A stretch of DNA of 64,000 nucleotides from Ascidiella aspersa (taxonomy: Eukaryota). The stretch is taken from assembly GCA_963924565.1 (NCBI GenBank), contig OZ004612.1:5084001-5148000 (forward strand), written 5' to 3'. Numbering within the stretch: position 1 is the stretch's first letter; each line of letters opens with the position of its first letter. The position numbers and the translations under genes are program-made. The notes beneath the pieces were generated by a model that saw nothing but the letters and a program-made list of their open reading frames with translations, searched no databases and had not been told where the DNA came from. Positions 9,585 through 64,000 of the stretch are shown piece after piece.

Positions 9585-12500
9585 TTAATTTTTTTTTCCA
9601 ACGTTCGCATTCTCGTAGATCGCATCTGAAAAAAAAACAGAAACAAATCGTCAGCAATTTAGTTTATTTAATCCACTTTAATGAAGTCTTACCAGTTCCA
9701 GGCATGGAACCATCGTTCACATTTTCGTACGGGTTTTCCAAATCCTAAAATAATAAGATAAAGTTAAATGATTATTGTGTCCGTAGAACTAACATCGTTA
9801 TCAAAAGCTGAATTATGACCAGCTTTATATTCTATCCAGATATTACAAAAAAAACTTTGATTATACTGTAATGTTGACAGGCTGTCGCACAACCCTGCTT
9901 CATCAGGTCTAAGTAGAAATAAAAGCGTTCTTTTTGGAGGTACTTTAAAGCTGGTTACCTTTCCATGAGTTGGTCCACTGGAAGGGTTTACATCAACGTT
10001 TGCTGCTCCAGTACCTACAAAACAAATAATTTTTCGGCGAATACATTTGTAAGGTTTTAAGCCGTCTGCATGCAAAAGATTTAGTTTAAGTTACAACAAC
10101 CTAATTTAGCATGTACTTGTATAGGGCATGTCGCCATGTGGATATATCACACCTTTTAGACCGATTTTTTAAGTTAAAATAACTCATAATGTCAAGTATG
10201 TAAGCTGGGTTGAAGCATAATAGGAAGTATTGTAAATGACTTGACTAAAGTGCACAAATGACTTAGAGTTAAAATGAGCTGTTTTCATGAAGAATTTTTT
10301 TTATAAAATTGGGTTATGTCTTAATTATTGCATATAAAACAACTAGCTTGCTGTATGTTGCGCTTTTGTTGTATTTTAATTGAGTTATTTCTCATACTCT
10401 TTTAGCAAGTTTAGCGATTTAATAGATTAACGTTTTATGTTTATGACAAGGAGATGACTTGCTTCAAATATGACTTGACTCGGACTTGAGTTTGACTTGT
10501 CATTTACACAAACATAGTTTATTTAAACTTAATTTAGTTATTTTACAAATGACTTGACTGGGATTTAGGTCATTTTCAGTCATTTCACAATACTGCTATA
10601 GGTTATCTGTTTATCAACTAAATTGTAACGTACGTTATTACTATCAGGACACTTAGTTTTAAAAAGTAAAACTTACTTAAACAAAGCGGTTATTCGAATT
10701 AAATTTGAGTAATTTCGGCTTAAACTCTACCTAACTTAACATTTACTGCCACAACCATTAGAAGCTTTCGTCATTTAAATTTTAAAGTCCTTGTAAAATT
10801 GTGGCTTACTTTGTGAAGTGTAGGCAACAGTAGCAGGTTGTTTCGTTGTTATTTTCCTTCTGTAAGTAAAATAGAAAAATAATGACATTTCTTTGAATCT
10901 AGAGCCATTTGATGAGCCAACCCGCGCCCCCGTACCTGTCACGTGTTTTAGCGTTCCCTCTCAAATTCGCCCAGTTATAAGTAATTGTCAAAGTTTTTTT
11001 TTGTAAATATTAGACGTGCTATACAAGTAAAATAACATTTTAAGTGCCAATTTTGTGGAATAAAATTCTTTTTACAGTGAATCTAAAAAAATGAGCTATA
11101 CAAATAAAAAGTTGTGGGACTATTGTGTGGAATCGGCAAAGTGTCTGCAAATAAAATTTGATGAATGACGCTGTAACTTTAACTCTCTAGTCCATATGTG
11201 ATGCTTTACAGTCGGCAGCCGTATAAAATTTCTGTAATAATTTTCCCATTCATGTTAATAATTTCCCATTTATGTTAACTACCTTTTGAACACGACGGCG
11301 ACAACGATTAAAATGATCAGTAGAAGAAACAGCAGGCCGCCAACCACACCGCCAAATATAGCTGACGACACACCTGAAAGTAAAAACGTAAAACACGTGG
11401 AAATTGCAAGTAAAACTCTGTGTAAGTGACTAAACATAGCCTAAAACTTGGCTAGAAGGACGTAAGTAAAAAAAATGGTTTTAGCCAAAATTATTAGACA
11501 TCGGAATGCAATACGAAGTATAGGACATTCCACGCCGCAAGTATACCAAAAACAACAGAATTATCTAAAGATTACATACGGCAGCTGTCATAAATTTAGC
11601 GTCCCATGTCATAATATTTATTTGCCAACCGCTTGAAAATTTCAACGGAAAGCTTTCTTTAGATAACAGCCTACAGGTTGAATTTAAGCGAAAACAACGC
11701 ACGTGTTGACAAAAAAATAATTAATAGGAAATGCACTATAAGAGTTGCATACGTATGACAGCATTACAAACCAACAAAACAGCAGGTGTCATGCCTTACC
11801 GCCTGCGCCGGGTAATTCTGTTGTTGTCGTGGTCGATCGTGGAGTAATGCAGTGACCTTTAACAGGGGTTGGTTCACTTGCGCCTTCGCAAGTCTCCGCT
11901 TGGATCTAAACATTCAGTTGAACTTGTTGACAGAAGTACATAAATTCGTCCATTTTTATGTACTGCAATTATTAAATTCGAAGTGATCAGTATTGGAACA
12001 CATGGATCAAACGACGTTTTGTTAAGTAGTTCCCTACTATTTTCAACCAATATATTTGTGCTTGCTGTTCGTTAGATTATAACTTCGGGAACTCGTAAAC
12101 AAACCAAGTGGATTATATTTAACATAGCTGTGGATTTAATTACTACAGTAAATGTGTTTGGCAGACGTGGTCCGCATCCGGACCTTTGTAGTATAGAAAC
12201 GCATAAAGCATTTCCAATTTTTGAAATATGATAATAAAGTAAAAAAGCAAATTTTTAAGGTTTTTGGTACGATAACGAGAAACGTAAAGGGAAATCCCAT
12301 AAACCGACTTTAAGAAGAAAAAATTACTCGTATTTCAAGACATGTACGTTAACTAAAAGGTTGCAAGGCATGTAATTTGAATAGTCTAATGTGGTAAACC
12401 AAGGTTATCTGACAAAGTGTTTACCTTTGTTTCATGACGATTGCTAAAACTAGTTTAGAGTCCCTGGTTTAGACGTTTCACAGCAAATAAGAAAAATTAA

Positions 12501-15500
12501 AATTCAAAATTTGTATTATACCTTAGTACTTTTGTGTATCAGGTTGTTTTAGGTTGAAGTATAGCTACATTTTACAGAATTGAAAAAGGTCGTAGTTTGA
12601 TGGCCGTGGATGTTTTGCCAAGGACAAACAAATGGCGTTTACACTCACAAGCAACACTTACAGTCAGGTTTACATTCTGTACATTGCCATGCTTCTCTGG
12701 AGATAGTTGGACATTCAAGGTTTGGTTGTTTGCTTTGAATCTTTCTTGGGTTGTCGCATGTTGACTCGTTGCAGTAACCTACATTTAAACACAAAATACA
12801 GTTTAAGAGATCAAATGCGAATCATCTTCAAAGGTATTTAAAAAGAAAAATTGGCACAGTATATACTTTATACTGCAGTGAGGTTGAAACGTTTAACCCC
12901 GGCCATACCGGGACGGTCGTCTAGCAAATCAAAGCATGACTTGTGTAAGTTGATAATATTATCCACAGCACCGTTGTTTGCGTATGATGGTATGCACAGC
13001 ATGGTTAACAGCGAATTTTTTTACCAGTGCTGTAAACAAGTCATTTGCACTATAGCTTAACTTTAAGTCAAATCAATTTCAAAAATTATTCAGACACAGT
13101 ACGAATCCAACTAATTGCCACAGCAAGTCCGGTTCAAGTGAAGTATTAAAATTAGTAAATTTACCAAATCCCAAGCAATATTTTGCATAACAAACACCAA
13201 AAACGGAACAAAAGCGATCAATTTTTGTTACGGCTTAAACGAAAGGTAAATAACTCATTATAAATAAACGTTTCCAAAAATCGCTTCTATTTTTCACACA
13301 TGTGTATTGCTCTGATCAGGCCTACTTAAATTCGAACAACCACGTATAAACGTATATCGAAACATACACATGCTAGTGCAAATGTGATCTCGCCCTTCTG
13401 AAGTATTTTTTTGACCCACGATAATGGCCTATGTATTACCGAACACCGGAAGCCTTCGACAGATTAGCTGAACCAGTCGAACAAAGATGCAAGCAGACCA
13501 GGCTAGAAAAACAACTATAGCCTGCAGTGAGGTTTGAACTAGAAAACCGGGGCCATAACCTCATATAACATACAGGGGCTGTAACCTCAAATATATTCAA
13601 TAAAAGAAGCAACGACATATTGTCCTTTTTTCAATCTTCAGGTGTGGTATTATAACCTTTTATCGTAAGTTTATATAAATATTTAACGCGCGTGGCGTGT
13701 TGTTTTAAGGCCATTCAACTTTGCTTCGCCTCCACTGACCAGGTATGACTCGTTGTTACGTTGTGTGGGCGTGAAGATGACACAGGGAGTTGTTGAGTTC
13801 ACGAACGCTCCGATCACTCTTTCGGGTAATCCATATCCTGTTGTGACGTTGCTTGATGACTCGACTGTAAAGTTGCTGCAGCCAAGGAAAGAAGCCTTCA
13901 CCTAAAGTAACCAGTTGTTGTTTGCAAGTTAAGTGCACTATTGCCCAGTATTGTAACCAAGTTATTTTGAAATGACCCAAGTCCCAGTCAAGTCATTTAA
14001 AAACATAACAAGTCAAGTCTCCAATCTGGTCGTTTTACGTGCAACAATTGAGATAAATAACTCAATTTGACACAATGACTTAAGTCTAAGTCAAGTGAAG
14101 TCAATTGAAAAGAGTGAGGTACTTTTAAGTCAATTGAGTTATGTCGTTTTTAAAAGTCATTCATGTACGGATCTGTAAAGAAGCTTGATAATAAACCTTA
14201 AAATAAAAAAGATTGATCGTAGATAGACATAATCTTAATAAAGACTTCGATACGAAAACCTTTATAAGCGTTGTTTGGATATATTTCAGTCACTTTAACT
14301 GATGATATATGTTTAGATGCCGCTTTAAAAAAGAAGTTAAATTAGAGATGAATCACCTTGATGATATACTCAGATCTCCGTGTTAAACCAGGAATGACAG
14401 CCTTAAGCATTGCATACGAAGCTGCTTGTAATTTCGTTTTGTTGTCTTGCGTTGATTGCACCTCCACCTGCATAACGCATAACACAACACAATTGACCCG
14501 GATAGCATTTTATGTACAAACAATAAAAAAAAACAATAAAAAAAAGCTGATACTAAGAGTTTCAAAAACGAAAATAGTTCCAAAACGAAAAATATCCTTT
14601 AAATAAGGTTTAAAAATATATTTTTTGATAAAAACAAATTACGTCTTGGTTTTAATTTGTATACGGTACTAACAATATTACCACAAAAATCAGCAATAAC
14701 GTTTTCAAATTTATAGCGGTTTTTAAACAGTGTTTGGCAACGGGCACCAAAATATTAAAATAAGTTCGATGAACAATTAAAAGAGAAACAAATATTTAAA
14801 ATTAAGTCTTGTTTCAATTTGTGTACTACTAATATTAAAACACAAAACAGCAATAACGTTTTTAAACTTTCATAGCGGATTTTAAACAGTGTTCCGCACC
14901 GTGCCCCAAAATACTGCAATACCCATCGATGAACAACTAGAAAAGACGCAAATATTTAAAGGTTTTGTAAGACGAACAAAACGTGATTTAATTTACCTGC
15001 ATGTCAATTTTGTGTCCTGTTAACGAGAGCAGCTTGCTGAAATTATCCTGCCATTGTAGTTGGGCGAATGACGAATTGCTAGAGTCAACTGTAGCTGTCG
15101 TTTCCACTGTTAATGTAATAAAACCCATGTTAAATGATTTTAACGCCCGTTTTGTGCAATCTGGATAATTTACTACCTGTAGAGTGGGTCTTTTTAATGT
15201 TATAAAACGAAAACAAGTCAGAAATATCTCACTTTAATAAACGGGACAGTTTAATTCTTTGCTTGATTTTGACAGTAATTGTGTGCAAACTGGATAGCAT
15301 AATACCTTCATAAGGTAGAACTTTTTATGTTATAAAACAAAATCTAGTTACAGACTAACCCACTCCAATGAACCCAATCGGTTATTTAAACTTACCACAT
15401 TTGAGAGAAACAAGTTACAAAAATGAGCAACTCTATTGAAATGTTATTTATTGCAAAAACAAGCAGAACTTCCTTACGTTTATTTTGACACACATAATAT

Positions 15501-18500
15501 GCTTTTTCCCCGGTGCAATTTGCATTTGTAGCAATCCACCCATTCCCATAGTGTAAAACCTTTTGCTGGCAGGTTGAGGAATTTATGGGGTTAAAGTCTG
15601 CATTGGTCCCATCACCCCACAACCATTGCTGACTCGAAGGGTGCCATCTTGCCCCAATCGAAATCTTAACATCTGCGAACAACATCTTGGTGATAAGTTA
15701 ATTACGAAATAGGTATAGAATTACAACTGATTGTGTGAAAAACGACCATGCTCCATTCGTAGACATACCGCACTCGCGATTGTTTTTAACCTGCAGAATA
15801 TTTGCATTGAGTTTGCTTTTTTGTATGCGATGAAATTATTTATTAAGTAATAAATAAGCTAAAAATACTACATATTGCGGATAATTAGTTAGCTATTTTC
15901 CTTTTTTAGAGCACTGGAAAGCGAACTTTAAAATAACATTAAGAGCCACAACAAATTTTCGATTAAAGCAATTATAAAAATATCCTCTCGCAGAGATATT
16001 TTGTGAATTAGGAGTACAAAATATACCCTTTTAACGTTAACAGAAATTAAAAAAATCGAAATATGTGAACTGTATATATCCAGTGTTGTAATGACTTTTC
16101 TTTTTGCCTAAATGTCTGGACTTCTTAACTTGCTATTTGTTTCGTTTTTAATATTTGCAACGTAAAATATTGCTCAGAATAAAAAGTGTGTTGACAGATT
16201 TTTTAAGTTTAACTTTAAATTTTAATACCACTCAAGTGAATTGGATTTGACTTGTTATGGAAATGACTTAGACTGCGACTTGATTAGGGTAACTTATGAC
16301 TCACTGGGACTTAAGTCATTTCAAAAAAATATTTATTTACAGCACTGTATTTAATCATAAAGTAATGTAGTAATCGTGCTATAACGATATGTACCTGGGA
16401 CGAAAAATACTCCATGGTATTTAGTGTATTGACCATACGCCGCATTCGCATCTGTCAACCTTACAGAAGTGCCGCCCGAATTCTCATACGCATAGACAGG
16501 CTTGTATCCAGGTGTCGCGTCTTTGACAGCATACAGTTTGAAATTCTTAACCCATCCTGTAACAAAAGTTTAAAGTTAGACACAGCGTTTCTGTCTTCGT
16601 GAACCTACAAAATATCCAAACCTGTTGATACGCAACTTCCTTGTATTGCCACATACCAAAAGGTCCAACCGTATCTGCAGAAATGAATGGCTATTCTGTT
16701 TGGAGCCAACCTATAAAAGTCGTAGGACTGTTACTGAAGCCTTTAGCCATTTTATTGGCGATCCCACACAGACTTTTAGATAAATTTTAAATATTTAGTA
16801 GCCTACTTTTATTAAATATGATGTTGCTACCAGGCTTAGCATATACTGAAAAAAAGACTTGATATTTATTTGTTTACAGACGTTTCGGCTACCTATTATG
16901 CATGATTCTTTTTCATCGGGTACTGTAACAACACCACGCCAAAAAACAGGCAGAGTAAAACTACACAAATCCCTGATGAAAGCATACAGGATAGTTAGCC
17001 GAAGGTCGGGCTGGCATGCAGCTTTAAAGATAAAGTCATAAATTGACGTCTTTGTTTTTTTATAGAAACAAATGTAAAACTGAATTGGAGTCTAAATACA
17101 TTCAAAAAGGAGTCAGAGTGTGCCTTTGTTCAATCAAACTATTTTCTAAAATGAAATGCACTCCAGCTTTTTAATTATACACCAGATTTCAATAAGGCCT
17201 TCATAGACCCCCTAAAATCAGTCCACGGTTCCCAGTTTAAGAAACCCTGCAGTAAATAGACTGAATATTCAGCTTACGTGGTGAACAGATCAATGTATTG
17301 TAAATGACCAAGGCGACTTGTGCTTCTCCAAGATCCAACTTCTCCTTGCTGTTTCGAATATTTGTAGGAGTACGAGTTGTAGAAAATCCAGACCCTTGTC
17401 GTTTCTATACAAATGCCTTTATGTTTAGGAATTCAATGCAACACTACTTCGCGGCAGAATTATGCGCTTTGGTATGTTCTGGTGAATTACTCAATGGACG
17501 AGGTATTGCTCGCTAAACGGGTAATTGCAGCCCACAAAGCAGTAAAGTAGGTTTGTGTGAACCGGGTAATAAACCCATATAGGTTGCGGAATCTCTCACG
17601 TCGTATTATCCGAAATAGGTATATTTTGTTCTAAACAACCCGCTGCAGAGTTGGTTTGAAAATAACCGAAATGCGACTTCCGAGTCCAACTCCAGCCAAC
17701 TGCGTAATTTTGTCGAGTCCCGACTAAATGTGGTGTGTATTCAGCAATCAACTTATAGGCGTGTCATATAATACATTCACTCACCACACATGGATGAAAT
17801 ATATTCCACTATATGCAATTCCGCGTTTTATACAATTTACGGTTGGCGGCCATATCAGTTTCAAAATTTGGTACTGCGCATGGGTGTCGGACTTTTCAAA
17901 CACCTAAATTGGATCACCAGACATGTTTAACTCATATTATGGTCAACACTTTCTAAAAATATAACTTAAGCTGCACATAAAATAAAATAAAAAGTATTTT
18001 GCCTCATGTTTGTTTATCTGATTTTTTTTACACTTTTTTTATTTGACACTTTTCAAACCTTTTATATTTTAGGCCCACCCTACCGCGACTTACCACTTGC
18101 GTACTTCGCTTGAACTGCGTTGAGCAGCGAATCGTTTGTCCTTGCATCGCCAGCCGTAACCAGATTCCCTCCCAGCGACTTGCACTTGCTTTCAGCTGCA
18201 TTTGCGTCCAATAGATCGTCGGACAGTGTGAGAACGTTGCTTCCACTCACTGCTGTGCTTATTGGGCAACCTGGAAGCAGTAGACAACTGGTTAGGTTTG
18301 CTTAAAACAAGGATCGTTCAACTTTTTTGTAGCACAGACTCTTAAAAATATTTTGGATTGCGTGGAACAAGGTATGCATGAAATTTAGGGGATGACGTCA
18401 TGAATTGACGTCATCAAACAAATTCACCCAAGAAATCTGCTATAAGGGATTTAACTAATAAAATCAAGTAATAAAACTGAAAGAAATTCTAAATAAATTA

Positions 18501-21500
18501 GGAGTAGGCGCCAAAGCGTTTTTTTGTCTAATAAACTATGTTCTTTAAAACTTCAATCCATTTTTCAAATTACCAAGATCTCGATTAGACCTTAATAGAC
18601 CCTCTAAAACCAACCCACTTACCCCCAACGGGGTCAACATACCCCAGTTTAAGAACCCCTTGACTAAAGCAGGAGCACGTTTATTGCAGAGCTATTTAAT
18701 TGCAACAGATTAAAATTAATTTAGGGACGGAACTTAAAAACTGAAAAGACCATAACAACGTACTAGTGATGTTTGCTATCTAATAATAGTAATATATGAT
18801 TCACACTAATGACCCGTTCCGAAAGTAAAAACAAAACAAATTAACAGCTGGTATGAACATTTGTGCGATTTGATATTATCGTACGAAAGTAGGTTCAAGT
18901 AATTAAGTTATCAACCAGTAAAGTGCAGCGGACTTACCTTGAATTTGGCAATATCCAGTCACTATTCCGGTTCTACTGGTACAGGTACTTGTAAGGGCTT
19001 GGATCTACAAAAACGTTACAAATCGTTTGATTATAAACCGTTAATGTTTTCACTTGATGTTTTTTACCTTCAGGCTTATTTGATCGTTGTATCCGTGGTG
19101 TGATATAGGAACTTGCAAAGTTAGTTTGCTATTTGCTGATTCAGATTTCACGTCAAAATAATATGTGCTTGAATTTGAGTTGCTGGTGGAATCAACCTTT
19201 ATACAGAAAAAGTGACGGTTAAATGAAATTTCCCTTTGAAATACTGTATTCTAATCGTTGGACATGCAACTAACCTTGAACCACAATATTTTCTGGTTTG
19301 ACAGGTGGCTAGCGTCAGGATAGACTGCCACAATGCACTTTGCAGAATTCTCCACTCTAGCGTCGGGTGTTGGAGTTTTGAGTCCCGTTTTAGCAGCGAC
19401 TTGGGAACTTGTCACAAAAGTGCTGGAGCAGCCGGTAAAAGTGGCACGAACCTGAACGTTTGATAATAAACTGGTAAACACAATCAGATTTAATTTTATT
19501 CAAGTGTTAATCACTCTAGGGTGTAATATAACCTATCAGACTGGTTGGAAAATATTCAACTATATGCTATCATACCTTTGCGATTACAGTTTACAGCCTT
19601 ATAGCTTAAGCACATGCGCACGCCAAACTCGGGACTCAGGTAGTTTTGCGGATAGTCTTACTCGGGTCCCGAGCCCCACTCCAATAAAAAGAGTCAAGTA
19701 CCATGTCCCGAGTACGATTCCGACTCTTCAGCCCTGCCTTGCAGTGGTAGCTTGTGTAAGAAGCTCACTTTGTTAGTGAATACATCAGTGTTGTAATGAG
19801 TTAAGTCAATGACTCCACTTAAATGCACTAAGTCACTGTTTTTAAATGACTAGACTTGACTTAGGTATTTTGGGCAAAATGACTTGATTTAACTTGAGTC
19901 TTTTAGTTAAATGAGTTGACTTGACTTGGGTGAAAATGAAGTGTTCTTAAAAATCTGTTTGTTTTTTTATAAAATTGAGTTATTTATCCTAATTTTTGTA
20001 CACAAAAAAACGCTTGTTGTGTCCATGTTATGTATTGTGTCGAGTTATTGCTTATAATCGGACGAGTTCCTCATTAATAGTTTAACGTTTAATTCTTATG
20101 ACAATAAGGATTCGAAATTGACTGCTCTAATTATGATTTGACTGGGACTTTATTTGTTATTGATTCAAAAAGACTTGTTTACAACAAGTATGACAATATT
20201 GTTTGTGTTACACTGATGCTGTTCTAACAGCATTGTTTAGTGTGTATTAAATCATTCTATTAATTTGAATAGGAAATGAATCAGCATGGCTAAGCCAGTG
20301 AGCTGTTAGTAAGGTCCAGCACACTCATAAAGATTTCAGTTTCAAATTAAATCCACCAGTGTTTTCTCAAGTTCCAGTCAAGTAATTTGAAAAACAACTT
20401 AATTACAATTCTAAGTGGAGTCTTCAACCAACTTTAAACTATTATATTTGACCTATTTGAGCAATAACTTAACTAAAAATACCACCAAACGTAACATATT
20501 GCAAGCTAATTGTTTTATGCGCAAAATTTTATAAACCAATTTTATAAATAAATCTTAAATGAAAACACTTGAATTCAACCGAGGTCATTTGTCCAAAATA
20601 TTCAAGTCAAGTCAAGTCATTTGTCCAAAATATTCAAGTCAAGTCAAGTCATTTGTCCAATAGACCTAAGTCAAGTTAAATCATTTGTCCAGAATAACTA
20701 AGTCAATTTCACGTCAAATTATTTGAAATAGTGACAAGTGCACTTAAGTCGATTCATTAACTTAAGTCGGTACAACACTGAGTCTAGTAGCAAACTATCT
20801 TTCCGTAAGCCCCTCTAATGATTTACATTACTATTTTGCTCCCATACTGGAGCAGTTACTTTTCGCGATATATATTTTTACTTTGTACACATAAAGTGAC
20901 TTAAGTCAGGTACTAAATACCAAATATAAATGTAAGCCACTTACAGTGAAATTGAAGTCAGTGTTGGCTGCTAAGGCTGTTACTCTATAACTTCCAACTC
21001 CGTAGGCCAGAGTGCGGGAAATGGCGGTTGTTCCTTGCAAAACCTGAGACATAAAAGTACTTTTTGATATCTTAAGTGTCTATAAACCTTTGTTGCGCAA
21101 AATGGAAATTAATGCATGACATGCTGATTAAAATGCTAGAAGTCTTACCTGAGTTGTCAAAGAGCTGCCCTGTATGATGGCAATTTTTTGGAGGTTTTGA
21201 CTCCACAGAACATCGGCCACACTTGCATTGCATTGCTGTGTGGTTGTTGAGCTAGTCACTGGGAATATAACATTGAGAAGATAATTTTATATGCACACTT
21301 ACACGTAATTTACGTAATTTATATGCACACTTACACTTAATTTGGCAAGCGTAGTATATGTTTGTCCCTGTGCAGTCCACGTTGTCAGTCGTCCAGCCTC
21401 TGGAATACTTGTACGCCTTCTGCTGGCAACTTGTTCCTCCGGGGTTAAAGGAAGCTACTGAACCGTCGCTCCACAACCAAGTACTAGTTGTTGGGTTGTA

Positions 21501-24500
21501 ACGAGCTCCAATAAACACCCGAGATGTATCAATAACTGGACAAAATACCATAGTGTTCTAATAACTTAATGACTAAGCTTACTTTATTCTTTTTGGCATT
21601 TAAGTTAGGTAGTTGCAAAAAAATGGTTCGACTTGGGAACTATTAGGGCAAATGACATGACTTGTACTTATAAATCCACTTACTATTAAACAGAAAAATT
21701 TGTTGGGGTACACCCGAGCAAAACCAACTCATTATTTACATCATATTGTCCAGTTATTATCAGATGCATGGAAAAATTAAAATGTGACTTTTTAACATAA
21801 ATATTGGGAGATGCAACCCCAAAATATTCTTGGTTTATCCAATTAAATCGCAATTTTCTAACACTTAGTTCTGGTGAAAAATGCCTAAATAACAACCATC
21901 ATTGAAAGCAGACTTAATTTTCACAGTAATTTCGTCGTAAAATTACTTTGTATAGGCCAAGGTACAAAGTACCTACGGTCCATCAATATAAAGACTTGTT
22001 GTTTGATTTCGGAACTATAAATTATGGTGAATATGCTTTAGCGGTGAATGGCAAAAATTAAATCCGCCCTGTTTTAGTTTTGAAATGTATTGTATGTATT
22101 CAAAACTGCTAAATATCAAGGTAAAGCTGCTATCCTATTTCTTTTTTAACATTTTCGTTTTCTACAACGATTATATACCGGTCAGTGTGAGTGAAGAAAT
22201 TAGGGCGCCATCTTTAAAAATCTCATGCGATTCGGTTTGACATTTTCTCATCGTTTCGGAAAGAAAATTATTCTCATGTCAACCCTGATTTAGCCTGCTT
22301 TATTCGCTTCGCAATTACAGGAAGAAACACTTTTCGGGGCCTAGCTTTATTTGATACACACCTGCATAGATTATATATTCCTCTGCACTAAAACCGTTGT
22401 GGTAATCGTATCGGGTGGTTGTTAATCTGTTTCCCCAAGCTACGTCTTGAAGTCTTCTGTACTGATAGATGGTTTGATGTCCAGCTGCAGAACTTGAACC
22501 ATACAGGTCAAAATCGTAACCCCAGTCAATGTCTGTAAAGTTAAAAAACAGATTAACATTCACTTAATACTGAATAACACTTGAACGTAAAAAACGTGAA
22601 CGGTATACATATAAAATGAAAGATGGAGAAACATATTTGTGTTAACAACTGTGATCTAGCTCTTCTGAAGTTGTTAACACACATATGAGCAGCGAAAAGC
22701 CATTGCAGAATCATCAAATATGTCGATGAATAATGCAAGCAGGGCAGGCTAGAAAAACATGTAGCCTGTTGGAAGGTTCAAACTCACGACCTCCGGTCAA
22801 GCCGGGACCGTCGCTCTACCAACTGAGCCACACAGGCTCAGATAGGTGCGAGTAACATCTTGTTTGTACAGCAATAAGTTGTAGAACGGGATCCCCAGTT
22901 AAATCAACTTGAACCGTATCACATATGTATATTTGTAACTGGACCAATCACATCTCGCTATCCAATGGTAAAATGACTAGGCAACAACAGCGGTGACTTG
23001 TGTGGTTACAGCAGGCGATACAACTAAAAACCCGCGTATATCATAGTAGGTAGGACGACGACGCCAATATGGCCACGGCCGTGAGTTCGAATCTCACAAA
23101 TTCCTTTCTTGCAATCAAATCCTTATCGACCAACTTATTTCAGCTGGCCCAACGAGGCAACAAAACGTATCAAGTAACAACCGATTTCATTAATGGTTTC
23201 GTACCATTAACGTTCTGTTTTTGTTATTTGTTTGAATGTTGCTCAGTATTATTTGCGCTTGCATTTGAATCTGCGACTAAAACAATCACAGTAATTCAGG
23301 TAAAAAATATCGAAGAATATGTCGAAATTACCGACATGGAGAAGAAAAAATGCGAAGTATACGACTAGTGTAAATTTCATCACATATTAAAAGTATATCT
23401 AAGTTACATTTTTATCTCACTTTTTTTTTAAAATAAAACTTTTAATGGTGCTTCGCATTTACGCTTACACAAAGACCTGTCAAAATGTTAAAAAATGTTT
23501 TTTTTTTAAAAAAAAGGTAAAAAGATCATTTAACACAGACAGCAGATATGCAAAAACTGATCAAAATTGAATAAATTAAATCTTACATGTGTAATCGCAA
23601 GTTTTCTTTCTGATTTGCCATCTGTACTCATGATGTCGACAGAAGTATAGACGAGTTCTTCCAGTTGCCCACCTGAATGCATTAACACGTTGATTAACTT
23701 AACACAGTGAAAAAGAGTTTTACGCCCATTTCACAACGCACAGTTAGGCTAAGGTGTTTCGTAGCCTCCGGCTCATTTGGATTTAGCTTAATTTTGCATC
23801 CGTATACTTTAAGGAGATTAATACATACTGTATAGTATTGCAGGCCTTATTTTCTGATTTTGGACAGAAATAAAATTGCATCCTTTCAGAATTCCATCTT
23901 ATTAAGGTTATAAGAACTGAATAAGAATTAAAAAGATAGAACAACGTAATTTTGTACCTTCCGATTCATTTGAATTTTGCTTTTTTGTGTCAGCAAAGGC
24001 GCCTCATGCAATACAGCTTGTTTCGCGAGGCATTTCGTCCTAAAATTCGGTAAATTCTGACAATATCATGCCTGACAGTTTCTGACTGGAACGTTAGTTT
24101 AAGCTATGTTCAACGTGCATCCTATCAAACACACAACGTAATTTTTTGGCAGTGTTAGACTAGATTGCAGTGTTAGACTACTGCACCTAACATTAACTTA
24201 TCGTCGACCCGCGTTTAGCCTTGCACACAACTTTATAACGCTATGCGTTTCCCCAGTAGGCTCTATTAGGATTTCCTGTTTTAAATTTCGCCGTCGTCTT
24301 GGGTTTCAATGCACGCGTGGAGCGATAAACGACTGATAACATTAGTTCAAAGTCGCATGCTTGTTCTGTAAAACAGGATAAAAAAAATAAACTATGACGG
24401 CATACTCAATCGTATAATGATAAGACGAATTTGCGATAAAAAGCAGATAAAATGGAGAGGTCTCTATTTGCTATCTGTTGGTTTCATCTATTAAGGAGGT

Positions 24501-27500
24501 ATGGGATGGACGTTTCATCGCAAGATACATCGCCACAACTATAGAAATGCCCGATATTTACATTGATCGAGAAAATGTCTGATACTCTGAACAAAAATTA
24601 CCGCGATTCGCTCCGATACCAAATGACGTCATTACTATTCTCCACCGACGAACATTTTTTCTTTGGTGCATTTATTCGCAAAAATGCAGTTTACTAGCCA
24701 ACTCAATACTATGGGTATTAAGTTGGCTATTGGACTACATTTTTAAAACCAGTGCTTCTTCACCTTTTTTTGCGACCCACTTTTATTGCAAGTTTTATTG
24801 CGCGACCCACAATTATGACCAAACGAATGAAAAGCATATTAGTGAGAAAAGACGCAATATAATACGGATGCCAATTAGTATTAATGCGAAACTTGATTTT
24901 GCTTATGGGATATTATCAGATCAAGACGTATTTGTTACATTGCTACAAAAATGTTAGTTAATAATAATGCAATAATTTTCCGATCTAATAGAAAACTGTA
25001 ACATTTAGGAATGCTTCGCGAGCATCTGGTTGGGAAGCACTGTTTTAAACAATGGGCAACTAGATTTGGGAGTGATAATTAATTAATAAGGTTAAATTCC
25101 TAACATGTTGTATTAGTATTTTTTACGTGCTGACGAAACGTATGAAGGGTCAAATCCGTTCACCTCTGAATATACAGCTGCTTAACAGATTACACTCGTT
25201 CAATGTTCCTCTTGTAAAAAAACTTTGTTTGACGCCGATTATCGCTGATTATTTTCACACCTATTTCCGCCTTTACAGTAGAGCCTATATAATATGGTTT
25301 TCAATCACGTTTCTTGACACATGAGCTTACGTGCAGAAAGAACCCAAGTTGACGCGGTGAATGAAGAATCGTGAAGCGCGTCATCACCAGCTGACGTTTA
25401 CCAGATGACGTCATGAAGTGATGACGTAGGTCGCGAGAGAACTTCCCGCAACCCAAGTAATCATAAACTAACCAAGCGTGGACCGAGTTTCGCCAAAAAA
25501 TGAGGCCAAAGTCGGATTTAACTTTCACCGAAGTCGCCCTAACTTCTTTAACCTGGACAATCGATAAGACTATCTTTTTGCTTATGACGTGTACAAAGCA
25601 ACGATGTCAGGTCACAATGTCATCGATCGTTTTCCGGACATTTCAGTTTTTAGCAGGGAACACCTTGTAAATTTTCCGCGTTTCATTTACGGTTTGACCC
25701 GTCATTCGGATTTCAAATAAGTATACTTTCCCCTGGTTTGCAAACTATGTACTTATTTACATGCGACTAACGTCGACAGGAAAAACTAATTTCCCGGAGA
25801 ACAATTTCAAAAAGTATAGCAGGGAGAAAGGCAATTCGTCTCGTGTGACACAGATGACAAAATTTGCTGAGCACGTGAAACTCATTGTTTGGCCTTGGTT
25901 CTGCGTCTGCATATTTCCAAATCCGTTGAGTTTGTTTGAACGCAAAGACAGTGACTGGGTAGTATTCTACCATTTAAATACTTTTGCAAATATGTAACAT
26001 GACGTGCTCCTTTCTATAAAAGCTGAATTCTTCACAGCAGTGTTTTTCAAATTATATTAATTTCCGGGAGAACCATTTCGTAGAATGACAAATATTAGCT
26101 TTAATTACGCTGAAGATTTTGTATTTAAAGAAACCGTTTTTACCATATTTAAAAGCATTTTTTTGAATTTTTTTGAACAACGACTTTTTCAAATGTTTTG
26201 TATTGCACTGTACGATTTAGGCTTGATTCAATCACTCAAATACTTAAAGTTACTTGCTGCAAATTTAAACTAGCAAGGCATTTTTTTGTCATACTCACGT
26301 TGTATAGAGATCAATGTACCACACACTTTCCCCAGTAACGCCCTTCGTTGATTTCCAAGGCCCAGTTTCGTTGGGGCTTTTCGAAAACTTGTAAACTTTA
26401 TCGTTGGTCGGTTGGTAAAAGACATACACCCTTTGGATGCCTGTGGATAAATAACAGCAAAAAAGTGAACGAAGCAATACTCCAACCACTTGTCCGTTAT
26501 ATTGCAATACATGCGAAGTTAGGTGCCAGCTATACAGGTAACTCTATGGGGATTATACAACGATTCTGGATACACTTTTATTTTGGAGTCAATAAACCCC
26601 TTCAAAGTCTGTAAACAGGTTTGAGGTATCCTCTGGTTTATTGAAAACTAAAAGAATTTGCTTATACTTAAGGCAACTGTTTAAGAGTTAACGCATTTTT
26701 AATTTAATTCGACTACAGTGTTTTAGTTCAATTTGACTTGTTTTTAGTAAATTTAAGCTCATTCTTTAAAAAATGAAGTGTGCGTAAGCTTAATGAATCT
26801 TTCGGGTCTCTGATTAAAAATACAATAGGCGGGGCGAATAAATACTAGAAATTGTTAAAATGGGCTGCGTACAACTACTAGACAGGATGTGGGTTGCCAA
26901 ATCCTGATTAAAATCAATCTCTGTTATTTTTCTATGCTCACTTCACCGGTCGACAATGTGGTGTTGCAAATATACGCCCCACGCCCCATGTAGGTGCTGT
27001 GCTTAGCAAGTCAACACACCTGCTCTGTATTTGCTGTCAAGAGCTGTTGTAAGGCTAGTTTTTATCTGGGTATCTTTAGCTGAGGCGAGATGTCCTCCCA
27101 GCTTGACACATTCCCCCTCAGCTGTGTCCGCATCGACTTGGTCATTTGATAAAGTCAGAACACTGTCCTTGACGCCAAAAGTCGTCAGCTCACAAGCTAA
27201 GAAAACAAACGCCGTAGGACTAGTCAAAAATGCAAAAAAACAGCTGATGTTGTTCCATAAAAATAACAGTTTACAATTATGCAACCTTTTAACAATGAAA
27301 AGTTTTTCGACCAGTAAGGTGAACCAAACCCATTGACTAATTTTACTGAAAATAATAAATGCAAAATAACACCGTATATAATCAAATCTTCGTTACTACA
27401 AGAATAAACAATCAGTTATTTGACTGAGTTTAAGGAATTTTCTGTTTTTTTTAGATCAAATAAATTTGTTAATATACCCGAATCTTGGATCAATACATTA

Positions 27501-29574: not shown

Positions 29575-29858
29575 NNNNNNNNNNNNNNNNNNNNNNNNNN
29601 NNNNNNNNNNNNNNNNNNNNNNNNNNNNNNNNNNNNNNNNNNNNNNNNNNNNNNNNNNNNNNNNNNNNNNNNNNNNNNNNNNNNNNNNNNNNNNNNNNNN
29701 NNNNNNNNNNNNNNNNNNNNNNNNNNNNNNNNNNNNNNNNNNNNNNNNNNNNNNNNNNNNNNNNNNNNNNNNNNNNNNNNNNNNNNNNNNNNNNNNNNNN
29801 NNNNNNNNNNNNNNNNNNNNNNNNNNNNNNNNNNNNNNNNNNNNNNNNNNNNNNNNNN
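29575..29858. other. Assembly gap (284 N)
   Basis: Run of N. Confidence 1.
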
Positions 29859-50600: not shown

Positions 50601-53600
50601 TTTCACAAGGTTAAAAATTATTTAAAAAATGCACGTGTAAGTTGATAATAATATCCACAGCACCGTTGTTTGCGTATGATGGTGTGCACAGCATGGTTAA
50701 CAGCGAATTTTTTTACCAGTGCTGTAAACAAGTCATTTGCACTATAGCTTAACTTCAAGTCAAATCAATTTCAAAAATTATTCAGACAATGCGAATTCCT
50801 ATGTATTACCGAACACCGGAAGCTTTCGACAGATTAACTGAACCAGTCGAACAAAGATGCAAGCAGAGCAGGCTAGAAAAACAACTATAGCCTGCAGTGA
50901 GGTTTGAACTAGAAAACCGGGGCCATAACCTTATATAACATACAGGGGCCGTAACCTCAAATATATTCAATAAAAGAAGCAAAGACATATTGTCCTTTTT
51001 TCAATCTTCAGGTGTGGTATTATAACCTTTTATCGTAAGTTTATATAAATATTTAACGCGCGTGGCGTGTTGTTTTAAGGCCATTCAACTTTGTTTCCCG
51101 ACCACTGACCAGGTATGACTCGTTGTTACGTTGTGTGGGCGCGAAGATAACACAGGGAGTTGTTGAGTTCACGAACGCTCCGATCACTCTTTCGGGTAAT
51201 CCATATCCTGTTGTGACGTTGCTTGATGACTCGACTGTAAAGTTGCTGCAGCCAAGGAAAGAAGCCTTCACCTAAAGTAACCAAGTGTTTGGAAGTTAAG
51301 TACACTATTGCCCAGTGTTGTAAACAAGTTATTTTGAAATGACCTAAGTCCCAGTCAAGTCATTTGTAAACTAACTTACGTCCAAGTCAAGTCGTTTGTA
51401 AACTAACTTAAGTCCAAGTCAAGTCGTTTAAAAACATAAAGTCAAGTCTCCAATCTGGTCGTTTTACTTGCAACAATTGAGATAAATAACTCAATTTTAT
51501 GAGAAAAAATTGACTAAAAACACTTTATTTCAACCCAATTGCTTTGACACAATGACTTAAGTCTAAGTCACGTCCTTTTACCAAAACGACTTGAGTGAAG
51601 TCAATTGAAAAGAGTGAGGTACTTTTAAGTCAATTGAGTTATGTCGTTTTTAAAAGTCATTCATGCACGGATCTGTAAAGAAGCTTGATAATAAACCTTA
51701 AAAAAAAAAAGATTGATCGTAGATTGAAATAATCTTAATAAAGACTTCGATACGAAAACCTTTATAAGCGTTGTTTGGATATATTTCAGTCACTTTAACT
51801 GATGATATTGATTAGATGCCGCTGTAAAAAAGGAGTTAAATTAGAAATGAATCACCTTGATGATATACTCCGATCTCGGTGTTAAACCGGGAATGTCAGC
51901 CTTAAGCATTGCGTACGAAGCTGTTTGTAATATCGTTTTGTTGTCTTGTGTTGATTGCACCTCCACCTGCATAACGCAGAACACAAACACAATTGACCCG
52001 GATTGTATTTTATGTAAAAAAACAATAAAAGTGGTGGCACTAAGAGCCTCCAAAGCGAATGAAAATACCACATTATTCCACGGGCTCTAAAAGTATAATT
52101 ACGTCTTGTTACAATTTGTGTGCTAACATAATTTGTATACAAAACAGCAAAAGCGTTTTACATTTATAGCGATTTTCAAACAATGTTCGCCCCCGTGCGC
52201 CAAAATACTGAAATAACCGTCGACAAACAATTTAAAAAAATGAATATATTTAAAGGTTTTGTAATGATATAAAGACGAAAAAAGTAATGCATATTACCTG
52301 CATGTCAATTTTGTGTCCTGTTAACGAGAGGTGCTTGCTGAAATTATCCTGCCATTGTAGTTGGGCGAATGACGAATCACAAGAGTCCACGGAAGCTGTC
52401 GTTTCCACTGTTAATGTAATACGCAAAGCTATATGTTGTCAAATACATGTTAAATAATTTTGACACTGGTTTTGTGCAATCTGGATAATTTACTAACTGT
52501 ACAGTAGGGCTTTTTATTGTTATAAAACCGAAAAAGGTTACAGAAATATCTCACTCTAATAGACGGAACAGTTTATTTATACATTCTTGATTTTGACAGT
52601 AATTTTGTGCAAATTCGATAATTTAATACCTGCATATGGTATAATGTTTTAAAACGGAAACAATTCGCAGTAATAGCCCACTCTAATGAACGGGAACCGG
52701 CTCATTAAACTTACCTAATTTTGACGGTATGAAGTTACAAAAATGATAAAACTCTTTTTTAAACTTGTTTTATTGCAAAAACAAGCAGAACTTCCTTACG
52801 TTTATTTTGACACACATAATATGCTTTTTCGCCGATGCAATATGCGTTTGTAGTAATCCACCCATTCCCATAGTGTAAAATCTTTTGCTGGCAGGTTGAG
52901 GAATTTATGGGGTTAAAGTCTGCAACAGTTCCATCTCCCCACAACCATTGCTGACTCGAAGGATGCCATCTTGCCCCAATCGAAACCTTAAAGTCTGCGA
53001 ACAACATCTTGGTGTTAAGTTAATTACGAAATAGGAATAGAATTACAGTTAATTCTGAGGAAAATAAGCAAGCTCCATTCGTAGACATACCGCACTCGCC
53101 TGTTTCATTTTGCCGATTATTTACATTGAGTGTGTTTTTGTGTGCAACAAAAATATTTATTAACTAATATAGAAGCTAAAAATAACACATTATGCAGTCA
53201 ATAATTTTTCTTTTTCAAGAACAATGAAAAACAACTTATAAATAACAGTAAGAGACAATTTAGAATTTTTTCAAAAAATCAACTATAAAAATATCGTTTT
53301 CTTTTTCCAGAAATACTTTGTGAATTAAGAGTAGGCTACAACATATACCTAGTTAAAACGTTAGCAAAATCTAAAAATTCAAGTATGTGAACCGTATATA
53401 ACCAGTGTTGTATTGACTTTATTTTTGCCTAAAAAACTGGGCGTGACTTAAAAAACTTAACTCCCTATTAGTTTCGTTTTTAATGTTTGCAACGTAAAAT
53501 ATTCCTCAGCATTGAAAGTGTGTTGACAGATTTTTTTAAGTTTAACTTTTAATTTTAATACCATTCAAGTGAATTGGATTTGAATTGTTATGCAAATGAC

Positions 53601-59600: not shown

Positions 59601-62600
59601 GGGAGATGCAACCCCAAAACATAATTAGTTTATCCAATTAAATCGCAATTTTCTAACACTTAGTTCTGGTGAAAAATGCGTAAACAACAACCATCATTGA
59701 AAGTAGACTTAATTTTCACAGTAATTTCGTCGTAAAATTACTTTGTATAGGCCAAGGTACAAAGTACCTACGGTCCATCAATATAAAGACTTGTTGTTTG
59801 ATTTCGGAACTATAAATTATGGTGAATATGCTTTAGCGGTGAATGGCAAAAATTAAATCCGCCCTGTTTTAGTTTTAAAATGTATTGTATGTATTCAAAA
59901 CTGCTAAATATCAAGGTAAAGCTGCTATCCTATTTCTTTTTTAACATTTTCGTTTTCTACAACGATTATATACCGGTCAGTGTGAGTGAAGAAATTAGGG
60001 CGCCATCTTTAAAAATCTCATGCGATTCGGTTTGACATTTTCTCATCGTTTCGGAAAGAAAATTATTCTCATGTCAACCCTGATTTAGCCTGCTTTATTC
60101 GCTTCGCAATTACAGGAAGAAACACTTTTCGGGGCCTAGCTTTATTTGATACACACCAGCATAGATTATATATTCCTCTGCACTAAAACCGTTGTGGTAA
60201 TCGTATCGGGTGGTTGTTAATCTGTTTCCCCAAGCTACGTCTTGAAGTCTTCTGTACTGATAGATGGTTTGATGTCCAGCTGCAGAACTTGAACCATACA
60301 GGTCAAAATCGTAACCCCAGTCAATGTCTGTAAAGTTAAAAAACAGATTAACATTCACTTAATACTGAATAACACTTGAACGTAAAAAACGTGAACGGTA
60401 TACATATAAAATGAAAGATGGAGAAACATATTTGTGTTAACAACTGTGATCTAGCTCTTCTGAAGTTGTTAACACACATATGAGCAGCGAAAAGCCATTG
60501 CAGAATCATCAAATCTGTCGATGAATAATGCAAGCAGGGCAGGCTAGAAAAACATGTAGCCTGTTGTAAGGTTCAAACTCACGACCTCCGGTCAAGCCGG
60601 GACCGTCGCTCTACCAACTGAGCCACACAGGCTCAGATAGGTGCGAGTAACATCTTGTTTGTACAGAAATAAGTTGTAGAACAGGATCCCCAGTTCAGAT
60701 TGAATCAACTCGAACCGCATCACATTTGTATATTTGTAACTGGACCAATCACATCTCGCTATCCAATGGTAAAATGACTAGGCAACAACAGCGGTGACTT
60801 GTGTGGTTACAGCAGGCGATACAACTAAAAACCCGCGTATATCATAGTAGGTAGGACGACGACGCCAATATGGCCACGGCCGTGAGTTCGAATCTCACAA
60901 ATTCCTTTCTTGCAATCAAATCCTTATCGACCAACTTATTTCAGCTGGCCCAACGAGGCAACAAAACGTATCAAGTAACAACCGATTTCATTAATGGTTT
61001 CGTACCATTAACGTTCTGTTTTTGTTATTTGTTTGAATGTTGCTCAGTATTATTTGCGCTTACATTTGAATCTGCGACAAAAACAATCACAGTAATTCAG
61101 GTAAAAAATATCGAAGCAATATGTCGAAATTATCAACATGGAGAAGAAAACATACGTAGTATACGACTAGTGTAATTTTCATCACATATTAAAAGTATAT
61201 CTAAGTCACATTTTTATCTCACTTTTTTTTTTTAAATAAAACTTTTAATGGTGCTTCGCATTTACGCTTACAAAACGACCTGTCAAAATGTTAAAAAATG
61301 TTTTTTTTTAAAAAAAAGATAAAAAGATCATTTAACACAGACAGCAGATATGCAAAAACTGATCAAAATTGAATAAATTAAATCTTACATGCGGCGTCGC
61401 AAGCTTTATTTCTGATTTGCCATTTGTAGTCAAAATGTCGACAGAAGTATAGACGTGTTCTTCCAGTTTCCCACCTGAATACATTTACACGTTGATCAAC
61501 TTAATACAGTGAAATTAGTTTACCACCAATTTCGCAACGCACAGTTACAACTAAGGCGTTTCGTAGCCTCCGACTCATTTGGATTTAGCTTTATTTTGTG
61601 TGTATCAGTACAAGCGCCCTATTTTTCCTTTGAAAATAACCACAGTGGGCATTGGGGCATTTTTTAACAAACTTTAAGCAGATTAATACATACTGTATAG
61701 TATATTGCAAACCTTAACTTCTGATTTCCTGATTTTGGACAGAAATAAAATTGCGTCCTTTTAGAATTCCATCTTATTTAGGTTATAAGAACTGAATAAG
61801 AATTAAAAAAATAGAACAACGTAATTTTGTAGCTTCCGGTTCATTTGAATTTTGCTTTTTTGTGTCAGTAAAGGCGCCTCATTCGTTCAAGATCCTAGCA
61901 AACGGGTAGTTTTTCTAGCTTGCCATACAAGGTTAGTTGAAACCCAGCAAATTACGTACTACAAACCCGCAAGGTAAGAAGAGTTTGCTCATCTACAAAA
62001 GGTTTTACAACCACTGAAGCTGATAAAATGGAGAGGTCTCTGTTTGCTATCTGTTGGTTTCATCTATCATAAGGAGGTAAGGGATGGACGTTTCATCGCA
62101 AGATACATCGCCACAACTATAGAAATGCCCGATATTTACATTGATCGAGAAAATGTCTGATACTCTGGACAAAAATCACCGTGATTCGCTCCTATACCAA
62201 ATGACGTCATTGCTATTCTCCACCGACGAAATTTTTTCTTTTGGTGCATTTATTCGCAAAAATGCAGTTCACTAGCCAACTCAATACTATGGGTATTAAG
62301 TTGGCTATTGGACTACATTTTTAAAACCAGTGCTTCTTCACCTTTGTTTACGACCCACTTTCATTGCAAGTTTTATTGTGCGACCCACAATTATGACCAA
62401 ACGAATGAAAAGCATATTATTGAGAAAAGGCCCAATACAGTACGAATGCAATTTAGTATTAATGCGAAACTTGATTTTGCATATTGGATATTATCAGATC
62501 AAGACGAATTTGATACATTGTTGCAAAAATGTTAGTTAATGATAATGCAATAATTTTCCGATCTAATAGAAAACTATAACATTTAGGAATGCTTCGCGAC

Positions 62601-63740: not shown

Positions 63741-64000
63741 CTGTAGATAAATACCGGTAAAAAAGTGAAAGAAGCAATACTCCAACCACTTGTCTGTTAT
63801 ATTACAATACAGGCAAAGTTAGGTGCCAGCTATACAGGTAACTCTATGGGGATTATACAACGATTCTGGATACACTTTTATTTTGGAGTCAACAAACCCC
63901 TTCAAAGTCTGTAAACATGTTTAAGGTATCCTCTGGTTTATTGAAAACTAAAAGAATTTGCTTATACTTAAGGCAACTGTTTAAGAGTAACGCATTTTTA

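Follow-up and report, generated by a model that had tools for sequence, protein, structure and literature searches.

Loops of an inserted domain as a hot zone of amino-acid change in split lectin-like genes of the sea squirt Ascidiella aspersa, in a family with patchy sequence exchange between its genes

We have studied a 64,000-nucleotide stretch of AT-rich, eukaryotic DNA of the sea squirt Ascidiella aspersa (assembly GCA_963924565.1, contig OZ004612.1, positions 5,084,001 to 5,148,000), which we call the window, and which carries two putative lectin-receptor genes, both on the minus strand, named copy 1 (paralog B) and copy 2 (paralog C). Each of these genes codes for two lectin-like units, and each unit is interrupted by an inserted domain of three exons. 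The loops of this inserted domain are where amino-acid change is truly concentrated, the scaffold that bears them being conserved, and the gene family to which both copies belong exchanges sequence in patches. The gene structure, the mosaic of divergence between the copies, the differences in rate and the location of the changes in loops are shown by the analysis. These data suggest diversifying selection on the insert loops, in a form that is not separable from neutral drift together with patchy copy-correction.

The ten exons of each gene were fixed by means of open frames, AG/GT borders and matching phases (Table 1), and they are ordered in two units, each made of a lectin-like N-half, three insert exons of ~130 residues, and a C-half that starts with an IGAR strand and WLWSDG. 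Phase-consistent AG/GT exons of this kind are present in both units and in five paralogs. The focal exon of this work, namely insert exon 2 of unit 1, encodes an FCR strand, a hypervariable loop (HHEYR), a W, and a second variable stretch, and it reads (T)WATGRTRLYFCRHHEYRWQIRKKTCDYT in copy 1 and WETGRTRLYFCRHFDYKWQIRNKACDAA in the equivalent minus-strand exon of copy 2. On the coding strand, a transmembrane-like hydrophobic segment followed by KR is placed downstream (3′) of both lectin units, and a membrane segment in that position, as read from the open frames, would predict a type I layout and not a type II one.

The rate evidence comes from five paralogs of the local cluster, three of them added to B and C, with 253 insert codons analysed by codon likelihood in our own Goldman-Yang program, using for each exon a separate tree, with whichever of the 3 or 15 possible topologies fitted best. 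Over all pairs, the replacement rate (dN) was ~0.09 in the insert exons vs. ~0.025 in the lectin halves, with similar silent rates (dS) of ~0.1, and the dN/dS ratio (omega) under model M0 was 0.79 in the insert exons and 0.30 in the lectin halves. Framework and loop columns were also separated a priori, being called from conservation in distant family members only, and with this partition the insert framework of the local cluster had an omega of 0.38 (130 codons) vs. 1.21 in the insert loops (123 codons), a difference with a likelihood-ratio test (LRT) value of 26.8 (p = 2e-7). The equivalent partition of the lectin halves gave omegas of 0.29 and 0.34, with the latter, that of the weakly conserved positions, being significantly lower than 1 (p = 0.003), and therefore it is the insert loops in particular that show fast replacement, which is not a property of weakly conserved positions in general.

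Site models applied to the same insert codons gave log-likelihoods of -1686.46 for M1a and -1680.36 for M2a with full optimisation (LRT 12.2, p = 0.002), placing 11% of the codons at an omega of 4.9 (class range 4-5), and an LRT of 11.4 (p about 0.003) with fixed relative branch lengths, vs. an LRT of 0 for M2a against M1a in the lectin halves. None of 29 data sets simulated under M1a reached the observed LRT, the maximum being 6.3. The insert LRT ranged from 7.1 to 12.3 when leaving one exon out at a time, and it was 5.7 for unit 1 alone, 6.7 for unit 2 alone, and 7.0 for unit 1 without paralog D. Single codons carry four or five different residues or codons among the paralogs, such as codon 15 of unit-1 insert exon 2 (GAG, TAC, GAC, GAA or AAC) and codon 21 of unit-2 insert exon 2 (GCA, CTA, GTA or AAA); several of these hot codons are independent changes on different branches, and some others are single-branch clusters, for instance TGG ACC TTT changed to TCG ATC GCG.

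The location of the changes was followed in AlphaFold models run with family alignments, each model covering a single exon. The model of insert exon 1 (26301-26438, 46 residues, 17 relatives) has a predicted local distance difference test score (pLDDT) of 90.1 with strands at residues 2-8, 16-19, 29-30 and 41-44, and that of insert exon 3 has a pLDDT of 79.8 with strands at 20-26, 33-37 and 50-55. The inserted domain is predicted to be beta-rich, and the exon 1 model may hint at its fold. In unit-1 insert exons 1 and 3, 24 of the 25 variable positions are outside the predicted strands (Fisher p = 7e-5), including all 12 of those in insert exon 1, and the top site of the selection test is the turn of the hairpin formed by strands 20-26 and 33-37, a loop which is hypervariable and indel-rich in the distant clusters. 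More generally, the loops that are variable in the local cluster are also hypervariable or indel-rich in the distant clusters, the YRR-loop of insert exon 3 is hypervariable across the wider family, and variability of the loop that follows FCR is seen in the two units and family-wide (FCKYSQLKW, FCTYQAKKW, FCQTGNNKW and others).

Diversifying selection had been proposed for these loops in an earlier note on this DNA, from a comparison of the two copies of the window alone. The translations of the focal exon and its 8 amino-acid changes (12 of 86 bases) were reproduced, as were FCRYGWTFW>FCRYGSIAW in unit 2 and WVKNF>LVEDF, NSYSYK>NSNYYK, QPTNDK>KPTNTK and SPNETGP>RPAETGL, and the Cys, FCR and Trp framework positions, described there as mostly kept, are kept between the copies; unit-1 insert exon 1 has 5 residue changes between them. 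The 8 replacement vs. 2 silent changes had been taken as evidence of selection, but they are the neutral expectation, given that the focal exon has 10 replacement and 2 silent differences by the Nei-Gojobori method (Nd = 10, Sd = 2) and a dN/dS of 1.25 for the B-C pair.

The two copies belong to a duplicated block, detected by self-blastn, in which positions 1733-26701 match positions 37760-64000 with 82-97% identity in pieces, with the block of copy 2 running on past the end of the window. The divergence within this block is a mosaic, one piece of which is a near-identical, homogenised tract that is also common to paralog D, according to the B-D and C-D flank divergences, and that holds insert exon 3 of unit 1 (1/171 differences) and the unit-1 C-half (2/201 base differences, one residue). 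The tract ends 60-250 bases from the focal exon, and beyond it the divergence climbs, with 5% reached by 23330-23530 and 11% in the next stretch, 23531-23730; in the unit-2 region it is 10-25%, and more in gap-rich windows. The one-residue difference of the unit-1 C-half had therefore been counted correctly, but its contrast with the insert stems from the position of this C-half in the homogenised tract.

The focal exon itself is 14.3% diverged, which is equal to its 5′ intron at 11.6% (p = 0.56), and it exceeds only its 3′ intron (3.8%), because the latter leads into the homogenised tract. The remaining insert exons are all less diverged than their flanking introns (6.5% vs. 14.5%, 5.7% vs. 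34%, 11.5% vs. 22.5%, and 6.9% vs. 14.5%). For the B-C pair, the insert exons therefore do not rise above the local intron background, which is the outcome that the note itself had named as refuting its inference. The two-copy contrast is confounded, and diversifying selection is unsupported by this pair alone; a comparison of two copies within a patchily homogenised array cannot show selection, and conserved vs. variable exons may mark only where the last conversion tract ran.

Both ends of the homogenised tract are at or beside exons, one at the unit-2 N-half exon (18094-18270) and the other next to unit-1 insert exon 2 (23330-23587). The intron past the unit-2 N-half exon is ~40% diverged or unalignable, and for that reason the tract ends may be set where homology stops.

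Exchange between paralogs is also visible beyond the two copies of the window. The best tree topology differs from exon to exon, which is a sign of exchange between paralogs, and variants of insert exon 2 of copy C recur in other paralogs (K17 and A24 in A, F14/D15 in F, and E2 in D). In the youngest pair, C-D (chromosome 5136500-5171290, with C partly in the window at 52500-64000), the ten exons differ at 59/1495 positions (3.95%) vs. 219/10636 (2.06%) in the rest, the silent sites of the insert exons at 8.3% vs. 2.9% in introns (p = 0.0013) and those of the lectin-half exons at 4.8% vs. 1.0%, and unit-2 insert exon 2 at 6/87 vs. 5/583 in its flanks (p = 0.001), with a pooled proportion of replacement differences (pN) of 4.0% vs. 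2.9% in introns (p = 0.11). Since the silent sites exceed the introns as well, positive selection on replacements alone cannot explain this excess in the exons, and homogenisation of the introns or exon patches imported from other paralogs could explain it.

In our proposal, the window carries B and C as part of a tandem array with five or more receptor-like genes, in which patchy exchange between paralogs, by gene conversion or unequal crossing-over, would have homogenised some stretches, such as the 5.2-kb tract, and other stretches would have stayed old, leaving the discordant exon trees and the mosaic sharing of variants. Outside the homogenised stretches, the codons of the insert loops would change at or above the neutral rate, with the insert strands and the lectin halves kept by purifying selection, and the inserted domain, rather than the lectin fold that lacks a sugar site, would be the carrier of the variable surface. 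That the fast loop change is due to diversifying selection for differing binding specificities among recognition-receptor paralogs is the explanation that we consider most likely, with about even odds of being right; in it, the causal part of selection, the function in binding and the role as receptors are inferred.

Several results weigh against diversifying selection, and a number of them agree equally with neutral drift, a tentative alternative which we consider possible, and in which unconstrained loops, multi-base mutations and small conversion patches would produce the changes, their clustering marking just the stretches spared from recent homogenisation. The insert-loop omega of 1.21 is not significantly higher than 1 (LRT 0.78, p = 0.38), and between B and C replacement sites are no more diverged than the local introns, with the focal exon close to its 5′ intron and the other insert exons below theirs. 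The site signal rests wholly on multi-hit codons, as masking the 28 of 253 codons with at least 2 base differences in any pair lowers omega to 0.41 and the LRT to 0, and masking only the six triple-difference codons gives p = 0.065; therefore, multi-base mutation or small conversion patches could mimic this signal, and single-branch triple changes such as TTT>GCG are indeed present. In a distant replicate, which comprises 16 units located at 27.9 and 30.1 Mb, the M2a test fails to reach significance (p = 0.17), and the omegas of insert exon 3 (0.36) and of the C-half (0.375) are alike. The tree length in this distant cluster is 4.88 substitutions per codon for the insert exon vs. 1.80 for the C-half, i.e., 2.7 times, and what sets the insert apart from the C-half there is how deep the divergence goes, both at silent and at replacement sites. 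Neutral drift has, on the other hand, to account for half a domain at an omega of ~1.2, which is unusual compared with 0.34 at the comparable positions of the lectin halves, for the rejection of M1a with its neutral class included (p about 0.003, 0/29 simulations), and for several hot codons with independent changes on separate branches.

The clustering of differences in the same loops, as put forward in the earlier note, stands as far as loops are concerned (24/25 outside strands), but not as regards the same loops in both units, since the overlap of variable columns between units 1 and 2 has an odds ratio (OR) of 1.38 (p = 0.33; insert exon 2 alone, p = 0.25), which likewise tells against diversifying selection. 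The use of the variable loops as a contact surface, and their sharing of a common face, are putative, the models being of single exons. Diversifying selection as such, not carried by the B-C pair, gains from the five-paralog site test (p about 0.003), a gain that is gone on masking the multi-hit codons; the site-model check that the note had recommended, run here as M2a vs. M1a, thus yields LRTs of 11.4-12.2, and 0 after this masking. To the same adverse side belong the broken state of paralog D and the RNA result given below.

Six close copies, A to F, were found inside 190 kb in a genome search with single exons, paralog A being on the plus strand. Paralogs A, B and C have open frames and canonical splice sites in all ten exons. 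Paralog D is a young pseudogene, as the frame is shifted in the N-half exon of its unit 1 and codon 5 of its unit-1 insert exon 3 is a TAA, and its unit-2 insert exon 3 has a duplication of 9 bases (KYL) that stays in frame; no unit 2 of paralog E was found in the sequence downstream of its unit-1 exons; and insert exon 2 of paralog F, a fragment, has lost its acceptor and contains a stop. In one RNA-seq run labelled as the same species, sampled at 6%, there were no RNA reads on any unit-1 exon of B, C or D, and the reads of this stretch were only on intronic repeats. The damage in D, E and F and this lack of reads would fit a local cluster that is losing its function, with the replacements being a consequence of recently relaxed constraint on dying genes, but we regard such decay as improbable, given that the lectin halves and insert strands of these same genes are clearly under purifying selection (omega 0.29-0.38), that A, B and C are intact over all ten exons, and that the signal survives without D.

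Less probable still is an assembly artefact, in which the copies would be two haplotypes of one locus set in tandem across the N gap at 29575-29858: this gap does lie between B and C, and the DNA run X6 is without the threefold depth expected for a tract common to B, C and D, but the depth of X6 is uneven and its library may not be a shotgun one; X1 contigs are ~2-3 times deeper over the shared tract than over the stretches specific to B; C, D and E are gap-free with the same structure; and the B-C homology stops at defined points (1733/37760 at one end and ~28170, the reach of the 5′ homology, at the other), with the 28.2-37.7 kb upstream of B unmatched upstream of C. B and C are therefore very unlikely to be haplotype duplicates.

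As to the depth around the focal exon, this exon is covered ~1x in X6, with 0 variant rows at that depth. The surrounding 22876-24057 has only ~0-2x in X6 vs. 6-10x nearby, and it is matched by contigs from both X1 and X2; the low X6 depth may be due to alleles that are strongly diverged, to a different copy number or to a bias of the library. The introns at 22679-22875 and 24452-25042 contain high-copy repeats, with a DNA depth of several hundred-fold, and these are the site of the RNA reads. Loose-end consensus sequences carry a tRNA-like GGTTCGAACTC box, and this box suggests that the intronic high-copy repeat is a tRNA-derived short interspersed nuclear element (SINE).

Farther along the same chromosome, at 27.8-32.5 Mb, insert exon 3 has over 90 further matches, which are weaker. 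The distant members examined have the same order of N-half, insert and C-half exons, and therefore the split lectin unit constitutes a large lineage-specific family. A relative with an unsplit, single-exon unit was also sought, and all the members examined have the same split exons.

The lectin-like nature of the two halves was assessed with Pfam, searched exon by exon, where the cutoff of Lectin_C (PF00059) is 22.6 bits. Over profile positions 40-105, the unit-1 C-half scored 16.0 bits (E = 0.021), and a score of 14.2 bits (E = 0.076) was obtained for the unit-2 N-half over positions 6-36; both are below this cutoff, and the N-half and C-half cover complementary parts of the profile. A profile of 17 C-half exons matches, among solved structures, solely chains of C-type lectin-like domains (CTLDs), namely KLRG1 (8e-4), the snaclec agglucetin (3e-3), CD94 (0.026), and then CD69, DEC-205 and lithostathine, with all the alignments on the C-terminal halves of these CTLDs. 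The framework motifs are present, with the helix-1 Cys in AEGECVKLGG of the N-half and, in the C-half, FIGAR/SIGAR as the WIGL-like strand, WLWSDG as WxWxDG, and three Cys, and I8, G9, A10, R11, W19, W21, D23, C36, C54 and C63 are invariant in the C-halves of 17 family members. For the calcium/carbohydrate site, neither EPN nor QPD was found in the C-half exons, and the WND position reads WTTDN or WIATN; therefore, these domains are lectin-like and not demonstrable sugar binders. The lectin domain is non-contiguous, and in either unit of every paralog the three in-phase insert exons separate profile position 36 from position 40.

For the inserted domain itself, the insert exons matched no Pfam family, insert exon 3 had no relative among 1.84 billion representative proteins in a full HMMER search, its profile had no match in the PDB, and the models of insert exons 1 and 3 had no match in Foldseek either. 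A weak, repeat-driven match of the insert exon 1 profile to designed propeller-blade proteins in the PDB was not accepted, and RHS/YD-like look-alikes in the Protein Atlas (score 0.88, 74/256 features, low recognition) were treated as chance. No relevant report of an ascidian lectin domain carrying an inserted domain was found in the literature that was searched. A bolder idea, which we consider doubtful, is that of a sea-squirt-specific family of at least 90 units on one chromosome, in which a domain of unknown fold would have been grafted in a C-type lectin scaffold lacking a sugar site, as a diversified recognition module, with its loops held apart among the paralogs by selection against the conversion that makes the introns and lectin exons around them alike. 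Such a family would be the equivalent, in an invertebrate chordate, of variable receptors for immunity or allorecognition.

Table 1. Features of the two gene copies in the window, of the tract they share, and of related loci on the same chromosome (window positions unless a chromosome or Mb position is given).
Feature	Position	Strand	Copy 2 position	Remarks
Copy 1 unit 1 N-half	27025..27170	-		3′ part of the exon only, 5′ border approximate; copy 2 equivalent just beyond the window
Copy 1 unit 1 insert exon 1	26299..26440	-	63599-63740	phase-consistent splice sites
Copy 1 unit 1 insert exon 2 (focal exon)	23587..23672	-		translation, AG acceptor, GTAAG donor, phase fit; alignment of six paralogs
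Copy 2 unit 1 insert exon 2	61389..61474	-		equivalent of the focal exon
Copy 1 unit 1 insert exon 3	22362..22532	-	60157-60327	within the homogenised tract
Copy 1 unit 1 C-half	21335..21535	-	59130-59330	within the homogenised tract
Copy 1 unit 2 N-half	18094..18270	-	55934-56110	
Copy 1 unit 2 insert exon 1	17278..17404	-	54752-54878	
Copy 1 unit 2 insert exon 2	16622..16710	-	53951-54039	loop FCRYG-WTF-W, WTF changed to SIA
Copy 1 unit 2 insert exon 3	16395..16556	-	53724-53885	
Copy 1 unit 2 C-half	15478..15672	-	52800-52994	
Transmembrane-like hydrophobic segment, copy 1	11288..11362 (approximate)	-		AIFGGVVGGLLFLLLIILIVVAVVF then KR; open-frame listing
Near-identical tract, 5.2 kb	18145..23330		55985-61130	~1% divergence; sliding-window divergence
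Paralog D	chromosome 5158874-5171025			broken copy; 1-base deletion (frameshift) in unit-1 N-half exon
Paralog E	chromosome 5181455-5188093			all five unit-1 exons present
Paralog F	chromosome 5216547-5217923			fragment with insert exons 2 and 3 only
Weaker matches to insert exon 3	27.86-28.03, 29.0-29.55, 30.04-30.24, 31.6-32.55 Mb			loci L007-L030, L048-L051

Sea squirts are the closest invertebrate relatives of the vertebrates and, to our knowledge, have neither antibodies nor a major histocompatibility complex (MHC). A receptor family that is large, quick to change and variable on the surface of an inserted domain would be a candidate for pathogen or self/non-self recognition in sea squirts, and an example of a lectin fold working as a scaffold for another binding module.

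Among known systems, the lectin-like receptor clusters of natural killer (NK) cells (Ly49/KLR, CD94, KLRG1, CD69) are alike in their compact CTLD fold without calcium/sugar motifs, and the best solved-structure matches of our C-half profile are KLRG1, CD94 and CD69. These NK clusters are also tandem arrays, in which genes are duplicated, lost and converted and the residues that touch the ligand change fast. The type II orientation with a single C-terminal CTLD of the KLR/Ly49 type is, however, not what we find here, where there are two lectin units per gene and the membrane segment comes after them, on their 3′ side, in a predicted type I layout, and where the variable part is a separate domain of ~130 residues inserted into the lectin fold. 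The C-type lectin-like proteins of snake venoms, together with other accelerated toxin families, are multigene families in which coding sequence changes faster than introns and replacement rates are near or above silent ones; they resemble the present genes in having a lectin-like scaffold in a multigene family. The venom proteins are secreted heterodimers that vary within the lectin fold, in contrast with the predicted membrane-receptor-like product and the variation in an inserted domain seen here.

The integrin alpha I ('inserted') domain (PMC10659397) serves as a working analogy only: there as here, the binding of ligands could pass to a domain set into a host-fold loop. Both the folds and the host domain are unrelated to ours, and the I domain is not hypervariable. 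The L/M opsins of catarrhine primates have introns homogenised by conversion and particular exons that are more diverged, which has been read as selection against homogenisation (PMC3213168), and the C-D pair has a similar pattern, with more divergence in the exons than in the rest (3.95% vs. 2.06%) and in the silent sites of the insert than in the introns (8.3% vs. 2.9%). In contrast with the opsins, where a few tuning sites are preserved by purifying selection (PMC3213168), many loop sites differ here among at least five paralogs, and the exon excess is also present in one lectin-half exon.

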